NCBI RefSeq assembly: GCF_006345805.1 | Contig: NC_042998.1 | Coordinates: forward strand, 118,420,001-118,484,000 | Direction: 5' to 3' | Length of the DNA: 64,000 nt | From: Octopus sinensis | Lineage: Eukaryota | Part shown: one piece after another, positions 11,245-58,604 of the stretch | Layout of the letters: every line of letters starts with the position of its first letter | How positions within the stretch are numbered: the first letter of the stretch is position 1 | The notes under the pieces: generated by a model | What the model was told of the DNA's origin: nothing | The model's input: the letters and a program-made list of their open reading frames with translations, nothing else | Database searches by the model: none | Translations under genes and position numbers: made by a program

Positions 11245-14200
11245 TAGTTTTATTTTTATAGCGTGCTTTCACTTCACTACCGAGCGCAGCTCTGTGTGCC
11301 TTGGGTATGTGTTGTGATTTGTTGTGATGCTCTGATGGTTATTGTATGGAAAGTGTTCTGCGTAGGATGTGTGCAGTGCCTAGTAGTGCAATTTTCTGTA
11401 TGTTATATGTGTTTGTAAGTCCTGGTGTTTTTGTTATGTATTTGTCTGAATATTTTTTTATCATGCCTAATGCACCTACTATGATAGGAATTGTTTCTGT
11501 TTTCAGGTTCCACATTCTAGTTATCTCTATTTCCATGTATTTGTATTTTGAGAGTTTCTCCATTTCTTTTAGAGACACGTTGTCATCTGCCGGTATTGAT
11601 ACATCAATTAGAAAGCATTTTTTTCTTCATGACAACTATATCTGGTATGTTGGCCTTAATTTCTCTATCTGTGTGTATCGGCATATCCCAGAGTATGGTT
11701 GCTTTCTCGTTTTCTGTGACCTTTTCTGGTGTGTGCCTATACCATCTTTTTTCTGTTGTTATTCCATAATGTTGGCATAGCTTCCAATGTATGTAGGTTC
11801 CAACTCTGTCATGTCTGTGAATATATTCCTTCTTAGCCAGGACTGGGCAGCTAGAGATAATATGATTTATTGTTTCTTGTCCATCTCCACATATTCTGCA
11901 GTTACTTGTAATATTTCTTTTCATTACATGTTTTTGGTAATTTCTGGTGGGGAGGCTTTGGTCTTGTGCTGCAATAAAAATCCCTCTGTTTCTGCTTTGA
12001 GTCCTGAGCTTCTCAACCATTGCTGGGATTTTTCTTTGTCTATTTCTTTTGCGTTTAGTTTAATGCAGTATTTACCATGAGGGGCTTTTCTTGCCATCGT
12101 TTTATCATGGCTCGTTGCTGTTCTATTTTTAGTTTGGATTTCATTTGTTTTATAGCTTTTGTTGTTTCTTCATCATCTTCTTCTTCTTCTTTGTGTCTAT
12201 TAGGTGGTATGATTTCTTGTTTGTATTTGTCAGCTTCCTGAAATACTGAGAACAGTTTTTTGTTTTACTCGTGTTTTGCTGCTATCTGGATCAGTTTTCC
12301 TTCCTTCTTAAGTAGGTATTTTTGCAGTCCTATGGTGGTTATTTTATAGTAGTTTTCCAGCTGTATAAGGCCTCTACCACCTTCTATACGTTGTATATAT
12401 AGTCTTTCTATGTCAGATTTTGGGTGATGCATCCTAGATCCTGTCAGTATTTTTCTTGTTTTCCTATCTATTTTGGACAGTTCATTTCGTGTCCAGTTAA
12501 GGATATTGTAGCTGTAACTTATAACTGGGACAGCTAAAGTGTTGATACCTATTATCTGTTTTAGCATTGAGCTTGATTTTAGTATTGATCTAACTCGTCT
12601 ATAATATTCTTTTTTTATTTTCTCTTTCATTTGTGTGTATTGTGTCTTATCTAGTTCATGGATTCCTAAGTATTTGTAAGTTTGGCTTTGGTCTAATCTT
12701 ATTTCATTGGTTTTATCTAGTGTGATGTTGTTACTCTTAACTAGTTTTCCTCTTTTCATGGTTACTTTGGCGCATTTTTCTAATCCAAATTTCATATCTA
12801 TTTCTTTGGTAAATCCATGAACTGTCTTTAATAGTGTTTCCAGCTGTTTGTCATTTGCAGCGTATAGTTTTAGGTCATCCATATATAAAAGGTGGCTGAT
12901 CGTTTTGCCGTAACATTTATATCCGCATCCAGTTCTATTTAGCATATCAGATAGAGGTGACAGTGCCAAGCAGAAAAGGAGTGGAGAGAGCGTGTCTCCC
13001 TGGAATATTCCTCTTCTAATGGGGATGTCTTTGGTTTTCATGAGTCCCTCTTTTGTTTGGAGGTGTAGGACTGTTTGCCATTTATTCATAGAGTGCTCTA
13101 TGAATTTTATGATTGTTGGTGCTACTTTGTTAATGGCTAGTGTTTCGAGGATCCATGTGTGGGGGATGCTATCAAACGCCTTTTTGTAGTCAATCCAGGC
13201 CATACTGAGCCTTTCTTCTTTCTGTGGCTGTCTTCAGTTACGGCTTTATTAATCATTAGTTGATCTTTACAGCCATATGAGCCCTTGCGGCATCCTCTCT
13301 GCTCTTCTGGGAACAGTTTGTTTTCGTCCAGGTGCTTGTTCAGCCTTTGCGATATCACTGCAGTAAATGACTTGAACATAGTAGGGAGGCAGGTTATTGG
13401 TCTGTAGTTTTCTGGTTTTGTTTCATTTGATTTGGGAATTAAGATGGTTTTCCCCTTCGTGAACCATTCAGGCATTGTCTCTGGCTCTGCTAGTATGCTG
13501 TTAAAATTTTCAGCCAGCTTTTTGTGCATTCCTGTTAGATATTTCAACCAGAAGTTGGGGATCTTGTCATGCCCAGGTGCCTTCCAGTTGCTTAGTTTTT
13601 GCAGTGCCTGGGTGACCTCTTCAGTTGTTATGGGGGTCCAAAGTTGTTCAGATGCCGAGTTTGTTATTTTCATACTCTTTTTTTTGGCTGTTCGTTCGCC
13701 GACAATATTTCTCTCCAGAATTCTTCCAATTCTTCTGCCGTTGGTGCTGCAGTGACTTCTATTTTATTTTTGCCCAGTTCTTGGTAGAACTTTTTGGGGT
13801 CGGAGTTGAACTTTTTGTTCTGTTCAAAGAAGCGTTGGCGTTTCTCGTACCGGCGGATCCTTTGAGCTTGGCAAGGATATCTTGCTTCAGCTTTTCTTTT
13901 ATCTCCGGCAAATCTTTTTCTGTGATGTTATATTTGCGGAGCATTTTTGTTCTCTTTTTGTTGCTTAGTAGCGTTGCTTGTTTGCTGATTTCATTAAGAA
14001 TCGACAGGTCTTTTCTAATTTTTTTAATTTTGTTTTGGATGTTATTTATCCACAGGGTTTGTTTGGGTGGTGGTACTGCTGTTTGGGCGGGTTTGGGTGA
14101 GTATCCAGCTTCTTTTGTGGCTGCATGGCTGCTGCGTATATCAAGTCATTTAGTTCAGTGATATCACTTTTTTTTGTTTCAGTGGCTAGTTCAGTGACGG

Positions 14201-17201: not shown

Positions 17202-17957
17202 CTAAGGGTGTGAAATAGTGTCTCTCCTGTATGAATACGTTTGTGTAAAGTCATAAATATTTTGAGAGAATAATTTACCACAGATATCACAAGAATATGG
17301 TGTTTCTCCTGTATGAAAACGTCTGTGTCCAGTTAAGTTAGAACTCACGGTGAATGATTTACCACAGATATCACAAGGATATGGTGACTCTCCTGTATGA
17401 ATACGTTTATGATAAGTTAGAGCACTTTTACCAGGATATAATTTACCACAGATTTTACAGGAATATGGCTTCTTTCCTGTATGAATACGTTCGTGATTAG
17501 TTAAAGCACTTCTTTGAGAGAATGATTTACCACAGATGTCACATTGAAATGGCTTCTCTCCTGTATGACAATGCTGGTGATTATTTAAAACACTTTTATC
17601 AGAAAATGATTTACCACAGACACTACAATGATATGGCTCCTCTCCTGTATGAATACGTTTATGTTGAGTTAGAGCACTTTTATCAGAAAATAATTTACCA
17701 CAGATATTACAGGAATATGGCTTCTCTCCTGTATGAATACGTTTGTGGGTAGTCAAGGTAATTTTTTGAGAGAATGATTTACCACAGATTTCACAGTGAA
17801 ATGGCTTCTCTCCTGTATGAATACGTTTGTGACTATTTAAGTTACATTTACTTGAGAAAGACTTTTTACACACGTCACAGTCATGTGACAATTTTTGTCT
17901 CTTTTTTTTGCTACCTTCTGGTAAAATCTGTTCCTTCACTTTCTCACTCTTTTCCAT
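17202..17957 (-). CDS. C2H2 zinc-finger protein, 7 complete tandem fingers plus a frameshifted 8th
   Basis: Repeated CxxC-x12-H-x3-H units joined by TGEKP-type linkers, in one exon. The 8th finger resumes in another frame (MTLHKRIHTGE). Confidence 0.88.
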   Translation of the reverse strand: MEKSEKVKEQILPEGSKKKRQKLSHDCDVCKKSFSSKCNLNSHKRIHTGEKPFHCEICGKSFSQKITLTTHKRIHTGEKPYSCNICGKLFSDKSALTQHKRIHTGEEPYHCSVCGKSFSDKSVLNNHQHCHTGEKPFQCDICGKSFSQRSALTNHERIHTGKKPYSCKICGKLYPGKSALTYHKRIHTGESPYPCDICGKSFTVSSNLTGHRRFHTGETPYSCDICGKLFSQNIYDFTQTYSYRRDTISHP

Positions 17958-19383: not shown

Positions 19384-22300
19384 TTAACCAGAGAGGAAAG
19401 TGTTTGTCTCCAATCCTTTCAGACGCGTCCACCAGATACATCCTTTCGCCATAGCCACAAGGATGATGAAAATAGCTCTTCCTTCCCGTTTGAAGGAAGG
19501 AGGCGTGACAATATTGACGATAGACTCAGCTGATAAACCGACTCGTCCCACACGTGACAGCAGTTGTTCGACATAAGCCCACAGGTCGGAAATTGTTGGA
19601 CACTGCACGAGTGCGTGCAGAACGGTTTCGTCGCTCTGACCGCATCTCGGGCAGGTCGGCCCCGTGTTTCTCGAGCCGTGTCTGTAGAGCTTATCCCGAA
19701 CGGGTAGCGCTTCTCGGTAGCACTGCCAGGCCAGGGATCTCTGGAAGTTGTCCATGGGCCCTGGCCCGAAAGTCGTCCTGAACAGGCGGATCAGGTACTC
19801 CTCGTCGACGTCCAGGTTCGCCCCGAGCTCGTCGTCGTACCTCCCCTCCACTAATCCCCTATAGAATGCTTTGGTTGTGATGAAGTCACTCAAGGTCGAC
19901 CCAGGACGGCAGAGTTGCTTGAGAGCAACGCGACACTCGCGGTGCAATTCGCCCTTCCTCGGCCTCTTTTTGATCCACGACTGCAGCTCGGTCATGGAGA
20001 CGAGCTGCGGGAAAGCGTGCCTCACAAACGGCGACCACACCTGTTCACCGTCGTCTACATAGAGCCAGAGATGTCGCAGTCTCAGCGCGTGTCTGTGCAT
20101 CATCAACCACGGCATGCCCAGCCCTCCTTTTAACGGGTGCTGACAGCAAATGGATCGCCTGACCATCGGGACGCATCCTTTCCACAAGAAGCGAAAGAGA
20201 ATGCGTTGTAGTTTGGTGATGGTAGGGTCGGGACAAGGTACGACGGTCAGGCGGCAGTAGATGACGGACGCGATGTACGTGTTCGCCACCTCCGCCCGAC
20301 CTTTTAGGGACAGTTTCCTCTCGGCGAGAGGACCACCCTACTCGTTATCTCGTTCCAGTTCTTCTCCACTTGGAGGTCCGGACCAAACCAGACCCCGAGC
20401 AACTCAACCGGGCCGTCGGTCCAGCGTCCCACGACGGAGGCGCTGGTGGACGGCATGGGCTTGCTTCTCCAGGTGCCTAGTCGCAAGCCCAGACTTTTCC
20501 CGGTTGATTTTCGCTCCTGTTACCGCTTCGTAGTTTTTCAGTGTCTCGCCGACCTGCTCGATGTGCTCGTGGCTAGACACTATGACGGTGACGTCGTCCG
20601 CGTATGCAGACACGCTCGTCGCGCATCCCAGTTCTCGCGGGATGCCTCTCAAAGTTGCCAGCTTCCGCAATAATGGCTCGAGACTCAATACGTATAGAAG
20701 CGACGAGAGGGGGCATACCTGACGGACCGAACGTGCGATGTGGAAGGGTCTCGATAGATGTCCATTCACGCGAATTACCGAACGGATGCCTCTGTACAAA
20801 GCGGCTATCCAGCCGCGGAAGACGGGACCGAAGCCAGCCGCTCCGAGGACCGCCTCCAAGTATCGATGGTCCACCCTATCGAAAGCTTTCGATTGATCCA
20901 AATTGATCAGCGCCCCACCCATGCCAGGTTCGTTAACTACCCTGTCTATGATGTAGCGCATCAGGTGGAGGTTGTCATGGATGGTCCGGCCTGGCACGGC
21001 GCATGTTTGCACCTTGTCGACCAGTTTCTCGATGACAAGCGCCAACCTCTTGGCTAGCACCTTGGCCAAAATTTTCAAGTCTGCATTAAGCAGAGTGATG
21101 GGCCTAAAGTTATCTATTACATTTCCCTTGTTTAGATCTTTCTTCAGCAGTGTTACGGCTCCTCGGCTCACAAAACCAGGAATGCTCCCGTTTTGCTGCC
21201 AGTTGCAGTACACCGCCGCCAAGAGATCTCCAAACAAGTCTGGCATACAATTGTAAAGCTCGTAGGGTAGACCATCCAAACCCGGTGATTTGTCCCTCGA
21301 GCATTCTGCCATCGCTTCCTGCACTTCCGCCGCCGTGATGGCACCTTCGCAGCACCCTGCCTTTCTTGTCGAGAGTCGTGGTAGGCTATGTAGGTAGGCA
21401 CTGAAGTCCACCCTACGTTCTTGCCCTCCACTCGTTCCGAACAGTCGGGCAAAATGCTGCTGAAAGGCCTCACACATTTTACTTGGCTCGAGCAATTCGC
21501 GCCCCTGTTCATCTACCAGGGACCGAATGGTGGCTTTGTTGCCCTGTTGCGCCTCTGCCACCCGGTCCTCTCTCGCGGCTCCAACACCTTCGTTCCTTAG
21601 AGCACGCATCCTAGCTCTGACAGCACATGCTTCGTGTTTGGCGTTGAAGTGTTGGTCGAGGGCCAACCTCGCCGCCAAAACGTCGGATGCGATGCCGCTT
21701 CTAATTGCCTCTTCTAGCTTCTTAACTAGCTCACCCTCTACTCTATTTCTATATATGGCTAGTGCTTTGCTGTACCTAATCGCTTCTGCTTTTACTGCTC
21801 TCTTGAGGGCAAACCACCATTTGTTGTTGATGATGGCTCCCGTCAAAGCCCTCTTTACTAGTGTGTTAATCCGGTCTCTGAAAACCTGTCCCGATGGGAA
21901 AGACGCGTTTAGTTTCCAGTATCCGGGACCCTGCCTAGGTGTCTTACCTAAGTCTAGCGTACATGTCACAAGTTTGTGATCCGTGTAGCTGACTATGTGG
22001 AATTGTGGACATCCTATGCTATCTCTGTCTACTGTCCTACACAGTATCCTATCTAGATACGATCTCGACGACCCGATGCGGTTGCTCCATGTCCACGTTG
22101 GCGCATTCGGGTGGTCTAGTCGGAACCTGTCAGACAGTTGAAAGCGTCTGAGCAGGTCTCTGAGGCATTTGCATCCCCGTCTATTCCTATCTCTACCCAC
22201 GTAGTCTACATGCGTGTCCAATGTAGCATTCCAATCCCCCACTAAGAGTAAAGGACGAGACGTTCCCAAGAATACTTCTAGACGTTGAAAGAAATCCGCC

Positions 22301-22642
22301 CGACCTGTCAAGGGCGGTGCGTAGACTGATACGAGTCGAAAAGCGCACCCATTGCTGCCGTCGACATCCAGGACGACCAGTCTACCCTCCGGGTCTACGA
22401 ATATTGTCCTTACTTTGAGATCCAGACTCTTGTGAAAAAGTACCGCCCATTCTCGGCAGACAGTGGGAAAAATAAATGTTGAACCGTCCGCCAAACATGG
22501 TCTTTAGGGCCCGCGGATTGTGGAGTCTGGTCTCACTTATGGCTATGATTTCTAACTTATGTGACTTTATGTCATTTAAGAGGTACCCTTGTTTCCAAGG
22601 GGACCCCAAGCCACGCGCATTTACACAACCAATCTTGATCAT
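19384..22642 (-). pseudogene. ORF2 (AP endonuclease + reverse transcriptase + C-terminal zinc finger), at least 3 frameshifts
   Basis: MIKIGCVNARGL, AISET, LVGDWN, YLDRIL, SDH-like YTDHKLV, KSPGLDG, NFRPITLLN, DQSKAFDRV, AYADD, CPRC..ETVLHALVQC across ORFs 22382-22642, 20404-22494, 20304-20486 and 19384-20289. Confidence 0.9.
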
Positions 22643-46754: not shown

Positions 46755-48245
46755 TTTTTTTTTCTTCTTTCAAATTTGCTTCCATTTCTTGTCGAGTGGC
46801 TTCCCGACTCCTAGGGCAAAGAAACTCATAGTATACATTGGTAGGCCATTAAACCAAACTCAATAGTTCGTTCATTTTTTTTTTAAGTTAAATTAAAATA
46901 CATGAGCAGCAACAGTTCTCACATCGACAATGCTCTTCTCAATACGTGTGATGTACCAGTTAAGACAATCTTTTGCACTTCTTGCAGGGATGGTAAGCCA
47001 GGGATCATTCTCATATAATTTTCGGTTCCCTTCTTGATCATTCCTAGTGATCCTACGATCACTGGTATTGTAACCGCCTTGAGATGCCACATTTTCTCAA
47101 TTTCAATGAGTAGGTCTTTATATTTTCTGAGCTGATATGGTTACATATCTCTTTCGCTGAGATATTATGATCACAGGGGATGCTCATGTCGATCAATAAG
47201 CAAACTTTATTGTTTTGGTCTTTCACAACAATATCTGGTTTATTTGCCTTGATGGTTCGGTCTGTATGTACTGGAAAGTCCCACAGAATGGTTACATTTT
47301 CTCCTTCAGTTACAGCCTCAGGGTGGTGATTATACCACTTGTCGGCAGTTTTGATATTGTAATGCCGACTTATTAGCCAGTGGAGATATTGGCCAACTCT
47401 GTCATGTCTTAATTTATACTCCACTGGTGCTAAGATTTACATCCAGAGATTAGGTGGTCCACTGTTTCAATCATGTCGTTGCAGAATCGGCATTTTGGGT
47501 CTGCTCCATTTTTCATCACATTGGCCTGGTAGTTCCGGGTTAATAGGCTTTGATCTTGAGCAGCCAGGATGAAACCTTCGCTCTCTGCTTTTAGCCCTGA
47601 GCTCCGTAGCCACTGATGGGTTTGCTTCTGGTCAACATCAGCTTGTTTGCTGCGGGTCACATATTTGCCGTGCAGAGGTTTCTCCTCCCACCTATCAGCC
47701 AATTGCTCGTGCGCTTTTTTCGTTGCCATCATTTTCACCTTCTTTGCAACAATAGTTGCCGTACTTCCTCGGGTTGTTCAGTTTGGGTATCCTGCACGAG
47801 ATCAATAGCAAATTTTTTGCTTTCGTTTATAATAGAATGAAGCTTCTTTCGTCTCTCGTGATTTTCCACGAGCTTTAGCATCCAGTCATTCGATATTTCG
47901 AGATATTTGGCCAGTCCAATTGTGGTTGTTTTGTAAGCTAATTCAAATTGGATCAGGCCTCGACCTCCTTGGGCTCTGGGAAGGTAAAGGCGATCTACGT
48001 CTGCCTTTGGGTGGTGCATCCTATTACAACTCAGCAGCTTGCGTATTTTCCTATTTATATTCTTTACTTCACTCATATTCAAGTTCAACACATTGTAGCT
48101 ATAAGTAACAACTGGAACTGCTAAGGAATTTATAGCTAACACCTTGTTACGTGCATTTAGTTAAGATTTCAGGACTGCACGAACTCTCCTATAACATTCC
48201 TTCCTGATCTTCTCTTTCATGCTTGCATGCTGAATACCTGGGCCT
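46754..48245 (-). mobile_element. 5'-truncated R4/Dong-like LINE (second subfamily)
   Basis: HHPKADVDRLYL, CRFCNDMIETVDHLISGC, KPDIVV..LLIDMSIP, IPVIVGSLG; (TAA)n on both sides. Confidence 0.9.
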
Positions 48246-55270: not shown

Positions 55271-56210
55271 TCAATCAATATATATATGCAAACACACACA
55301 TGCACGCACGCAAACACACACAAATACATATATATATATATATATATATGCAAACATTAAAGATTATACATGCATATACAGCTACAGAAATAGATGCAGA
55401 GATAGATGTAATATAGATGTATGATCTTATATGTATGTATACACAATAAAATTGTCTCTTATGGCCTTAATATACATTTCAAAAAGATGGAATCGATGGA
55501 AATACCGGTTACCCACTCTTCCTCTGATTAAAATCACGTGATGCAAATGCTCGAGGCATTAATTCCCAAATGAAAGCAATATTCGAAAGAAATGTGCTTC
55601 AGATTGAATTTATATTAAGTGGGAAGAAATGTGCGTTCGTATTGAAAATCAATATTTACCTTTTCACACACACACACCACACACACACTCACACACACAC
55701 ACTCACACATATATGTATATATATATATATATATATATAAATATGTATATATATATGTATATATGTACATACATACATATATACATACATATATACATCT
55801 ATCTATATATATATATATATATACATATATATAAATACTATTTTTATTACTAAATTTGGCGAAACTGCAGTATAAGAAAAGTTAAGTTTGTAAAAGTTTT
55901 TAAACCTCATCTCACGAAATTTATCCAGCTATTGTGTATCTAGTACACTCTTCGCCTTGAATGTAATGATATATGTATAATATATGGCGTGTACTGGTAC
56001 ACCGGCGATTATAATTAATTTTATTGTATCGCATTTATCTTTGTTTACATATTCTCTCGATAAATTTCTGACCGTTAGACGATATACCACAATCCCCTAT
56101 TTTGTCGGGTTTGTTCGGAGTCTGCGCAGTGTTTTGAATAGTTTAGAAAGAGCATTTCGATAGAAGCACATGGATCTATTGGTATGGTCTTTCCAATCAT
56201 CATAACAGAA

Positions 56211-56280
56211 TCTACTGATGAGCCAGCCTGGGTAAATAATACTATTTTTATTACTAATTTGGCGAAACTGCAGTATAAGA
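56211..56280 (+). ncRNA. Type I hammerhead ribozyme, array unit 1
   Basis: CTGATGA 56215-56221, GCCA/TGGC stem II, GAAA 56264-56267, ACTGCAGT stem III, predicted cut after GTA 56275; stem I lacks one T. Confidence 0.82.
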
Positions 56281-56607
56281 AAAGTTAAGTTTGTAAAAGT
56301 TTTTAAACCTCATCTCACGAATTTATCAGCTATTGTGTATCTAGTACACTCTTCGCCTTGAATGTAATGATATATGTATAATATATGGCGTGTACTGGTA
56401 CACCGCGATTATAATTAATTTTATTGTATCGCATTTATCTTTGTTTACATATTCTCTCGATAAATTTCTGACCGTTAGACGATATACCACAATCCCCTAT
56501 TTTGTCGGGTTTGTTCGGAGTCTGCGCAGTGTTTTGAATAGTTTAGAAAGAGCATTTCGATAGAAGCACATGGATCTATTGGTATGGTCTTTCCATCATT
56601 AACAGAA

Positions 56608-56679
56608 TCTTACTGATGAGCCAGCCTGGGTAAATAAATACTATTTTTATTACTAATTTGGCGAAACTGCAGTATAAGA
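56608..56679 (+). ncRNA. Type I hammerhead ribozyme, array unit 2
   Basis: TCTTA / CTGATGA 56613-56619 / GCCA..TGGC / GAAA / CTGCA-GTA / TAAGA; predicted cut after 56674. Confidence 0.9.
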
Positions 56680-57007
56680 AAAGTTAAGTTTGTAAAAGTT
56701 TTTAAACCTCATCTCACGAAATTTATCCAGCTATTGTGTATCTAGTACACTCTTCGCCTTGAATGTAATGATATATGTATATATATGGCGTGTACTGGTA
56801 CACCGGCGATTTATTAATTTTATTGTATCGCATTTATCTTTGTTTACATATTCTCTCGATAAATTTCTGACCGTTAGACGATATACCACAATCCCCTATT
56901 TTTTCGGGTTTGTTCGGAGTCTGCGCAGTGTTTTGAATAGTTTAGAAATAGCATTTCGATAGAAGCACATGGATCTATTGGTATGGTCTTTCCATCATTA
57001 ACAGGAA

Positions 57008-57078
57008 TCTTACTGATGAGCCAGCCTGGGTAATAAATACTATTTTTATTACTAAATTGGCGAAACTGCAGTATAAGA
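57008..57078 (+). ncRNA. Type I hammerhead ribozyme, array unit 3
   Basis: Same architecture; CTGATGA 57013-57019; predicted cut after 57073; stem II extended by GTAATAAA/TTTATTAC. Confidence 0.9.
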
Positions 57079-57408
57079 AAAGTTAAGTTTGTAAAAGTTT
57101 TTAAACCTCATCTCACGAAATTTATCCAGCTATTGTGTATCTAGTACACTCTTCGCCTTGAATGTAATGATATATGTATAATATATGGCGTGTACTGGTA
57201 CACCGGCGATTATAATTAATTTTATTGTATCGCATTTATCTTTGTTTTATATTCTCTCTCGATAAATTTCTGACCGTTAGACGATATACCACAATCCCCT
57301 TTTGTCGGGTTTGTTCGGAGTCTGCGCAGTGTTTTGAATAGTTTAGAAAGAGCATTTCGATAGAAGCACATGGATCTATTGGTATGGTCTTTCCATCATT
57401 AACAGGAA

Positions 57409-57481
57409 TCTTACTGATGAGCCAGCCTGGGTAAATAAATACTATTTTTATTACTAAATTTGGCGAAACTGCAGTATAAGA
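57409..57481 (+). ncRNA. Type I hammerhead ribozyme, array unit 4
   Basis: Same architecture; CTGATGA 57414-57420; predicted cut after 57476. Confidence 0.9.
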
Positions 57482-57655
57482 AAAGTTAAGTTTGTAAAAG
57501 TTTTTAAACCTCATCTCACGAAATTTATCCAGCTATTGTGTATCTAGTACACTCTTCGCCTTGAATGTAATGATATATGTATAATATATGGCGTGTACTG
57601 GTACACCGGCGATTATAATTAATTTTATTGTATCGCATTTATCTTTGTTTACATT

Positions 57656-57736
<81 letters not shown>

Positions 57737-57897
57737 AAGATTCAAAGCTGATGTACACGAAGTACGATCATTGTTAGAAATAGCAGCCGGTGAGCATATC
57801 TCTTTACTGATCTTAGTTCATATTTTAACTGGGGAGTTCAGCCAAGTAAACAGGCAGAGATGAAGTGAATATTTAAAAACCACATCGACAATCGTTG

Positions 57898-57971
57898 ATT
57901 CAACTGACGATGACCCATCGGATTCGCACTTACGCACATGATCCGAAAAGTGTGAAACTGCAGTATTGAAT
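57898..57971 (+). ncRNA. Solitary type I hammerhead ribozyme of a different family
   Basis: ATTCAA / CTGACGA 57904-57910 / imperfect stem II base, inner TCGGAT-ATCCGA helix / GAAA 57954-57957 / ACTGCAGT / GTA / TTGAAT. Confidence 0.78.
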
Positions 57972-58604
57972 TATCCTTCATTCCTCTAACGGTCTCCGTA
58001 AAGGTAAGACGGAATTTTCCTATATTCACCACTCGCAAACTTCTCTGCCTGTTGAGATTCAGTGAAGCTGTACATAGCGCCGATAGCTTACCGACTGCTA
58101 TTGATTGTGTGCCTGCACATGTGATGATGTGTGTGTGTGTATGGTGTATTTGAAAGACACTTCGACCAAGGGATATAGCTTGATGCAAGACATTCAGACT
58201 ACATATACATTTTTGTTTTGCTTGGTTATTCAAATGATGTATTAGCTTTTTATCGAATTTGTATATACCAAATTACTTGTAGGAGGCTTTGTTGGAAAGA
58301 ACACTTTATATATGCAAAAGCGTCTACTGGATTTATTCAAACCCTCAGGAATGGTGGCTAGGATTGAAACTGTTTCGGTTGACCCTTGTTCTTTTGTTCT
58401 CCTTCCGCAAACATATTCTACATGACGACATGAGGTTCACATCTATTTAAAGATGAAGCATTTGGGGTTATAAATTTTGGTTATAATTTTTATATTTTTC
58501 GGTTATAATCCATTTATATTTGAAGCACAAGAAAACATTGAAACAAATCACTGTTAACTTATTAGTTTTATAAATACACACACATACAAACACATCTAGC
58601 TAAC

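Follow-up and report, generated by a model that had tools for sequence, protein, structure and literature searches.

What kind of element is the ~400-bp tandem repeat that interrupts a microsatellite in the genome of Octopus sinensis, and do its units encode a self-cleaving RNA? The repeat lies in a stretch of 64,000 nucleotides (assembly GCF_006345805.1, contig NC_042998.1, positions 118,420,001 to 118,484,000 of the forward strand), which we analyzed as a whole and refer to as the window; all coordinates below are numbered from its first letter. A sequence-only reading of the window had proposed a cephalopod retrozyme and circular-RNA system. Our analysis makes it likely that the locus is a retrozyme of the kind that lacks long terminal repeats (non-LTR): a non-coding, non-autonomous element made of ~400-bp tandem units, each encoding a type I hammerhead ribozyme on the plus strand. 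Retrozymes have been described as a class since 2020, and their satellite forerunners since 1987. The element class, its mechanism, and its occurrence in molluscs are already published; the array is a further example and not a new element type. The one distinctive trait of its hammerhead is a long, interrupted helix II.

Array organization and the encoded hammerhead

Tandem Repeats Finder, which served as the array caller, reports a plus-strand array at 55831–57654 with a period of 399, 4.5 copies, 97% matches, 1% indels, and a score of 3461, in agreement with the extent of 55832–57653 that had been read from the letters. Unit borders were set by cutting after each GAAACTGCAGTA; the ends of this 12-mer are the predicted cut sites (55872, 56275, 56674, 57073, and 57476) and coincide exactly with the five sites named in the sequence-only reading. 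The complete units measure 403, 399, 399, and 403 nt, as the predicted monomers of 399–403 nt required, and are accompanied by a leading partial unit of 42 nt and a trailing one of 178 nt (Table 1). Differences between units consist chiefly of homopolymer-run lengths, with a few substitutions; in the unit alignment the majority are private to a single unit, and units 1 and 2 have two variants in common (CAGAAT and ACTAATTTGG).

No reading frame is conserved between units, which bears out the earlier statement that the monomer has no open reading frame (ORF); the longest ORF spans 92 aa and is limited to one copy because of indels. ARAGORN finds no tRNA-like part in the unit, and on this empty scan a tRNA-like origin as a short interspersed element (SINE) was rejected. 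No LTRs are present, the flanks being microsatellites; neither a primer binding site nor a polypurine tract was the object of a dedicated search. The GC content of the array is 34%, against 35.5% for the window, and no further copy of the unit lies elsewhere within the 64 kb, leaving a single array.

Table 1. Coordinates of the array, its units and ribozyme copies, and the adjoining features
Feature	Coordinates	Strand	Basis or remark
(CA)n before the upstream (TA)n tract	55665–55709	.	Tandem Repeats Finder
Upstream flank, imperfect (TA)n-rich microsatellite	55709–55830	.	Tandem Repeats Finder row 55709–55837, sequence
Whole tandem array, 4.5 units of 399–403 bp, 34% GC	55831–57654	+	
Leading partial unit: begins within helix II loop; helix II 3′ strand, GAAA, helix III, predicted cut after 55872	55831–55872	+	
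Unit 1, 403 nt, cut site to cut site	55873–56275	+	
Unit 2, 399 nt	56276–56674	+	
Unit 3, 399 nt	56675–57073	+	
Unit 4, 403 nt	57074–57476	+	
Trailing partial unit, 178 nt, last letters ...TTTACAT	57477–57654	+	
Hammerhead copy 1: intact core, proximal helix I short of 1 nt (TCTA), distal helix I altered	56202–56288	+	Fails descriptor, no Rfam type I match
Type I hammerhead copy 2, intact; cleavage predicted after 56674	56599–56687	+	Descriptor, RF00163 20.2 bits over full model
Type I hammerhead copy 3, intact; cleavage predicted after 57073	56998–57086	+	Descriptor, RF00163 20.1 bits
Type I hammerhead copy 4, intact; cleavage predicted at 57476, after GUA	57399–57489	+	Descriptor, Rfam, folding
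Downstream flank, nearly perfect (AT)n microsatellite	57655–57734	.	Tandem Repeats Finder 57657–57734, 39.5 copies
Solitary degenerate hammerhead-like relic outside the array: 8-bp helix I, core CUGACGA, GAAACUGCAGUA as in the array, helix II unclosed at the core	57896–57973	+	Relaxed scan

The ribozyme motif reads, from 5′ to 3′, UUAAC-AGGAA-UCUUA, CUGAUGA, GCCAG...UUGGC, GAAA, ACUGCAGU, A, and UAAGA-AAA-GUUAA; the first A of ACUGCAGU is common to GAAA, and the cleavage-site A comes next, with the predicted cut after GUA. Helix I comprises 5 bp (UCUUA/UAAGA), an internal loop (AGGAA/AAA), and 5 further bp (UUAAC/GUUAA), a distal stem that is formed in the minimum-free-energy folds of copies 2–4. 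The stem I TCTTA/TAAGA described at the outset is thus present, but its extent had been understated by the internal loop and the five distal pairs. Because helix I is open-ended, the hammerhead is of type I. Helix II starts with GCCAG/UUGGC, five pairs of which one is G-U; beyond these come a 4x4 internal loop and a 9-bp distal stem, rich in AU, that ends in a 7-nt loop. Helix III is supplied by ACUGCAGU, which gives a 2-bp stem with a UGCA tetraloop in the monomer and 8 bp in a dimer. Helix I (AGGAA/AAA) and helix II (CCUG/AAAU) each have an internal loop at a distance of 5 bp from the core, a geometry compatible with a loop 1/loop 2 contact; mussel ribozymes lack most conserved loop 1/loop 2 contact bases (PMC7229834).

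CTGATGA cores occur in the array at 56215, 56613, 57013, and 57414, and once elsewhere in the window, at 2670, where a hammerhead context is absent. All four complete copies carry the core CUGANGA ... GAAA ... UH together with the invariant hammerhead positions (C3–A9, G12–A14, A15.1–U16.1, a non-G at 17, and the G10.1–C11.1 pair). The leading partial unit retains the 3′ half of the core, and the half motif that had been placed at 55857–55877 agrees with the sequence. Three helices are found in copies 2–4, helices I and II being intact in three of the four complete copies, and copy 1 has a helix I defect. The claim that every unit holds the motif accordingly stands for the core (four of four) and for the TCTTA strand of stem I in copies 2–4, and falls for that strand in copy 1, which reads TCTA. 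A strict descriptor applied to both strands of the window matched copies 2, 3, and 4 and nothing else.

Comparison with Rfam gives a consistent picture for the same three copies. In 101-nt searches, RF00163 (Hammerhead_1) matches copies 2, 3, and 4 across the full model (positions 1–45) at 20.1–20.2 bits and E about 0.007. A search over 2.4 kb at E up to 10 returned only microsatellite look-alikes of microRNA families, the hammerhead being missed there because of the speed filters; that search found no ribozyme of any Rfam family on the minus strand, and by this search and the descriptor the plus strand alone carries the ribozyme. Spurious sub-threshold microRNA matches of this kind (mir-297, mir-466) come from several microsatellites.

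The chance expectation was obtained from 300 first-order Markov simulations of 64 kb that used the window's own dinucleotide frequencies and counted both strands, a complete motif being defined by a helix I of at least 5 bp, a helix II of at least 4, and a helix III of at least 2. Complete motifs arose at a rate of 0.013 per 64-kb window, or about 8e-5 per 400-bp unit, and a loose descriptor was matched 0.21 times per window. The real window holds no complete motif outside the array. A chance origin of the motif is excluded for practical purposes.

Dimer folding and comparison with known retrozymes

Metazoan type I hammerheads with a short palindromic helix III are weak as single motifs and active as double hammerheads in tandem transcripts (PMC4209133, PMC7229834). 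In the array, ACUGCAGU is self-complementary, with a predicted self-duplex energy of −13.1 kcal/mol. Two ribozyme segments cofold at −44.9 kcal/mol, versus −37.8 kcal/mol for the separate monomers, and are joined by an 8-bp intermolecular helix III; in a 516-nt transcript spanning two adjacent ribozymes, the minimum-free-energy fold pairs both palindromes together. These folding results are predictions; nearest-neighbour energies ignore tertiary contacts. On this modelling, the array ribozymes probably act as double hammerheads, and the idea of dimer cleavage put forward in the sequence-only reading gains in-silico support from the cofold energies and the palindrome pairing.

Folded as a circle, the array unit reaches −0.212 kcal/mol per nt (z about −1.6), compared with −0.213 (z −1.0) for the mussel retrozyme and −0.324 (z −3.1) for the coral one, and the unit's folding z-scores range from −0.9 to −2.1. 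We dropped a "highly self-paired rod" as an argument for a retrozyme on these scores, the validated mussel retrozyme being no better; since the mussel retrozyme is similar, the modest values are no argument against a retrozyme either. As predicted here, self-pairing of the unit neither supports nor weakens that assignment. The internal complementarity reported earlier between 55916–55925 and 56059–56068 is present, and the pair forms in the minimum-free-energy fold.

The sequence features fit the definition of Cervera & de la Pena 2020 (PMC7229834), as the retrozyme proposal had held: the locus is a non-coding array of short tandem repeats, within the range of about 150–450 bp and of dimers to multimers that is given for such elements (PMC7229834; bioRxiv 10.64898/2026.07.22.740005), with a type I hammerhead core in each unit (one unit having a helix I deletion), low GC (34%, against a bound of below 45–50%), no conserved ORF, and no LTR. 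Retrozymes with type I hammerheads are on record for coral, mussel, and axolotl, and their range is given as "from molluscs to arthropods" (PMC7229834); the supplement of the same paper gives cloned units shown to self-cleave and to exist as circular RNAs. The corresponding ribozymes read ...CA CUGAUGA GGCC-AGAAA-GGCC GAAA CAGUACUG UC in coral, ...CA CUGAUGA GUC-UUUUGUA-GAC GAAA CGCGCG UC in mussel, and ...CA CUGAUGA UGCC-CACUA-GGCU GAAA CACGUG UA in axolotl Ax353 (PMC7229834). Coral, mussel (ACGCGCGU), and axolotl Ax353 (ACACGUGU) have a layout in common with the array: A2.1/U1.1, CUGAUGA, GAAA, and a palindromic helix III. Outside the core, the array unit has no similarity to the cloned coral, mussel, and axolotl retrozymes, which agrees with the statement that retrozyme repeats are species-specific (PMC7229834).

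The Mytilus galloprovincialis retrozyme (clone Mg353) resembles the array in its non-coding tandem units with one type I hammerhead each, its repeat length (350–390 bp vs. 399–403 bp), its GC content (37% vs. 34%), its 8-nt palindromic helix III (ACGCGCGU, where the array has ACUGCAGU), and its folding energy per nucleotide, which is the same. It differs in being cut at GUC, whereas the array has GUA, and in a helix II of 3 bp with a 7-nt loop, against 5 bp, a 4x4 internal loop, and a 9-bp distal stem in the array; for the mussel, moreover, expression and circular RNA have been shown. The array and Mg353 also have a 13-nt identity, TTACTAAATTTGG, at 57451–57463 and equivalent positions in the other units. 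In the array it lies in the helix II 3′ strand, but in the mussel clone it directly follows the cleavage site on the 3′ side; with an E of 0.067 it is probably due to chance.

Amphibian satellite 2 and the axolotl retrozymes (Ax353, Ax330) likewise possess a weak palindromic helix III, through which tandem transcripts tend towards a double hammerhead, and Ax353 is cut at GUA as predicted for the array; the axolotl units differ in their GC content (51–58% in cloned copies), their short helix II hairpin, and their tens of thousands of copies. Plant LTR retrozymes (PMC4918200) resemble the retrozyme proposed here in being non-autonomous, processed by hammerheads, and spread via circular RNA, whereas their hammerheads are of type III and sit inside LTRs, and their primer binding site, polypurine tract, 4-bp target duplications, and GC above 55% set them apart from the array.

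For cephalopods, the literature search yields no account of a retrozyme, in line with what the sequence-only reading had stated. The giant squid genome paper lists 235 Hammerhead_1 hits by Rfam annotation, with no further analysis (PMC6962438); this number probably understates such families because Rfam thresholds and speed filters miss the motif when the window is scanned as a whole.

Insertion site, proposed cycle, and competing explanations

(TA)n adjoins both ends of the array. Because runs of at least 8 TA repeats cover just 1% of the window, two such flanks are an unlikely coincidence. The 5′ junction falls within the AU-rich helix II loop, where ...tatacatatat gives way to ATAAATACT..., and at the 3′ junction ...TTTACAT is followed by taatatata, where continuation of the unit would read ATATTC; the junction letters therefore offer a few bases of possible microhomology with (TA)n at both ends. 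A target-site duplication is unreadable because the site is a microsatellite.

Flanks of this type recall published insertion biases. Among Penelope-like elements, the Naiad clade has a strong (TA)n insertion bias (Craig et al. 2021, PMC8557442), and a similar microsatellite bias, via a linker motif, has been proposed for Neptune elements (PMC8557442). For animal retrozymes, both an origin from Penelope-like elements and a dependence on them for mobilization have been argued (PMC7229834; bioRxiv 10.64898/2026.07.22.740005), and cephalopod genomes are reported to hold such elements (PMC8557442, PMC6962438). We infer on these grounds a link between the array and Penelope-like elements.

The cycle that we propose is carried over, in every step, from the published retrozyme family, the array itself contributing sequence features. 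Transcription of the array would produce a multimeric RNA in which the palindromic helices III (ACUGCAGU) of adjacent units pair into a double hammerhead. Each ribozyme would cut after GUA, and cleavage would release linear monomers of 399–403 nt with 5′-OH and 2′,3′-cyclic phosphate ends, which a host RtcB-type tRNA ligase would close into circles. A reverse transcriptase acting in trans, most likely that of a Penelope-like element, would copy the circle by rolling circle, and integration of the multimeric cDNA at a (TA)n microsatellite would leave an array that starts and finishes mid-unit. The array does start and end mid-unit, as had been noted, but this feature cannot tell rolling-circle reverse transcription apart from the usual dynamics of satellites.

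An "active or recent" family, in the wording of the sequence-only reading, is suggested by two observations, the ~97% identity of the units and the intact cores. A more specific proposal—a hitherto undescribed retrozyme family that is active at present in octopus-like cephalopods, has an unusually long and interrupted helix II, cleaves as double hammerheads only, yields abundant ~400-nt circular RNAs, and is inserted by Penelope-like elements specifically into (TA)n—is tentative, and our judgement leans against it.

Several findings weigh against taking the locus for a retrozyme. Rfam at the gathering score returns no match in the whole window, and copies 2–4, at 20.1–20.2 bits, fall below the RF00163 gathering threshold of 34 bits because a 38-nt insert occupies the helix II loop, where the model expects about 8 nt. 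Helix II is itself atypical: 5 bp, an internal loop, and a 9-bp extension take the place of a short hairpin. For one motif by itself, the fold compatible with a hammerhead is predicted at −10.7 kcal/mol, against −17.2 kcal/mol for an alternative in which UACUG, where helix I passes into the core, pairs with CAGUA and part of the core is hidden. Copy 1 has no type I match in Rfam, and its ribozyme is probably impaired, unless a read error accounts for the 1-nt deletion. Read errors could likewise lie behind many of the differences between units, which are changes in homopolymer length. No Penelope-like element was found in the window, where Pfam and a six-frame GIY-YIG pattern gave no credible match; among ten retroelement-like window ORFs put to Pfam, five have domains of APE-type long interspersed elements (LINEs) and five have no match. 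Finally, neither a second locus nor a relative's copy appeared in the viral, metagenome, and prokaryotic collections.

Of the alternatives, the one that best withstands the evidence is a decaying satellite or minisatellite, in which the hammerhead would be an inherited relic, the size of the array would have changed by unequal crossing-over or replication slippage, and neither an RNA cycle nor mobility would exist at present. A single locus in the 64-kb window, an impaired copy 1, and a nearby degenerate solo motif that attests to the decay of such motifs here all suit this account; mid-unit ends are normal in satellites, and the two variants common to units 1 and 2 (CAGAAT and ACTAATTTGG) are what local duplication would give. 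Against it, three of the four ribozymes retain all core bases and three helices, with changes falling in loops and homopolymer runs, and ~97% identity indicates a young array. Variants are mostly private to one unit, as expected from a single multimeric insertion, and short arrays are typical of retrozymes, 75% of families having at most 7 units (bioRxiv 10.64898/2026.07.22.740005). We regard decay of this kind as unlikely.

Tandem pseudo-LTR remnants of a Penelope-like element that has lost its coding part, with no independent retrozyme family behind them, would account for several of the same features. Penelope-like pseudo-LTRs have type I hammerheads with a palindromic helix III and insert in partial tandem (PMC4209133, PMC8557442); their hammerheads likely act as dimers, and the elements are linked to microsatellite targets (PMC8557442), with which the (TA)n site agrees; and retrozymes have been reported as sister to pseudo-LTRs (bioRxiv 10.64898/2026.07.22.740005). 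Yet no remnant of a reverse transcriptase or GIY-YIG ORF lies within or beside the array, and 4.5 head-to-tail units without a coding fragment depart from the usual order of pseudo-LTR, ORF, and pseudo-LTR. The hammerheads differ as well: those of Penelope-like elements are minimal motifs with a helix I of 4–5 bp and a poorly defined loop 1 (PMC4209133), whereas the array has a canonical-looking helix I with a clear internal loop and distal stem, and no bulge at 10.1. This origin is very improbable.

That the array is no genomic retroelement but cDNA integrated from an exogenous circular RNA, viroid-like or delta-like, has a negligible probability: a ~400-nt unit with a hammerhead and no ORF does resemble viroid-like RNAs, but the ribozyme occurs in a single polarity, the GC content (34%) equals that of the host window (35.5%), two pattern scans of viral contigs gave no match, and folding is unexceptional (z about −1 to −2). 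A fortuitous likeness to a hammerhead within an ordinary repeat, for which the silence of Rfam at the gathering score might speak, is equally negligible in view of the simulated expectation (0.013 per 64 kb, about 8e-5 per 400-bp unit), an Rfam alignment spanning the full model, the extra distal stem in helix I, and a layout equal to that of tested retrozyme ribozymes.

If the retrozyme proposed here is active, it would extend ribozyme-made circular RNAs to the cephalopods, a lineage of unusual RNA biology and transposable-element-rich genomes, and would make available a natural hammerhead, its helix II long and interrupted, in which the control of cleavage by tertiary contacts and dimerization could be studied. 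The (TA)n on both sides ties retrozymes, in a concrete and testable way, to the endonuclease by which Penelope-like elements target microsatellites, a connection so far argued chiefly from co-occurrence and sequence similarity.

Searches for relatives and neighbouring features

Database searches returned no relative of the unit. A specific DNA pattern had no match in viral contigs and metagenomes, and a relaxed pattern had none in viral contigs; in metagenomes and prokaryotic genomes the relaxed pattern gave 30 matches, none of them related (bacterial, without helix I or helix II). A chimeric protein query assembled from the unit's pseudo-ORFs found no match among called genes, exact look-ups of the window's ORFs found no record, and a full-text literature search with the ribozyme sequence retrieved only unrelated primers. 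Four microbial-mat metagenome contigs have CTGATGAG...CGAAACTGCAGTA in common, with conserved flanks and a variable middle; as hammerheads they were rejected by the descriptor, since helix I cannot form.

Downstream of the array, 490 nt past its last cut site, stands a solitary degenerate hammerhead-like relic (Table 1). Its helix I, TGATTCAA/TTGAATTA, differs in its bases from that of the array yet is paired, its core reads CTGACGA, and it carries the identical 12-mer GAAACTGCAGTA, for which, taken by itself, the expectation is about 0.008 occurrences per window. Between the core and any helix II pairing there are about 15 nt, and the relic at 57896–57973 has no Rfam match. An old, related insertion is the probable origin of this relic. 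The second GAAACTGCAGTA at 57954 was considered as a fifth active ribozyme and rejected, helix II being unclosed and an Rfam match lacking.

The window also contains copies or fragments of APE-type LINEs at 19384–22494, 11604–13673, and 47059–48142, all on the minus strand, with Exo_endo_phos, RVT_1, and zf-RVT domains. One LINE ORF (20404–22494, minus strand, 696 aa) is largely intact; its closest named relative is an Argonauta hians protein at 53% identity, and a protein from GCA_024449705.1 is 69% identical to it. A LINE reverse transcriptase 65% identical to the window's is encoded in JGI metagenome 3300037538 (contig Ga0314842_014093), which looks like animal host DNA.

A C2H2 zinc-finger ORF at 17202–17957 (minus strand, 251 aa) shows an 84-bp internal periodicity, and its only near full-length matches are from Octopus vulgaris, at 59% identity and 99% coverage. 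The moderate similarity of the LINE and zinc-finger proteins to those of Argonauta hians and Octopus vulgaris makes a cephalopod source, probably an octopod, plausible in itself. Microsatellites of at least 8 copies make up 3.8% of the window, (TA)n, (CA)n, (ACAT)n, (TAGA)n, (GATA)n, and (TTA)n among them.

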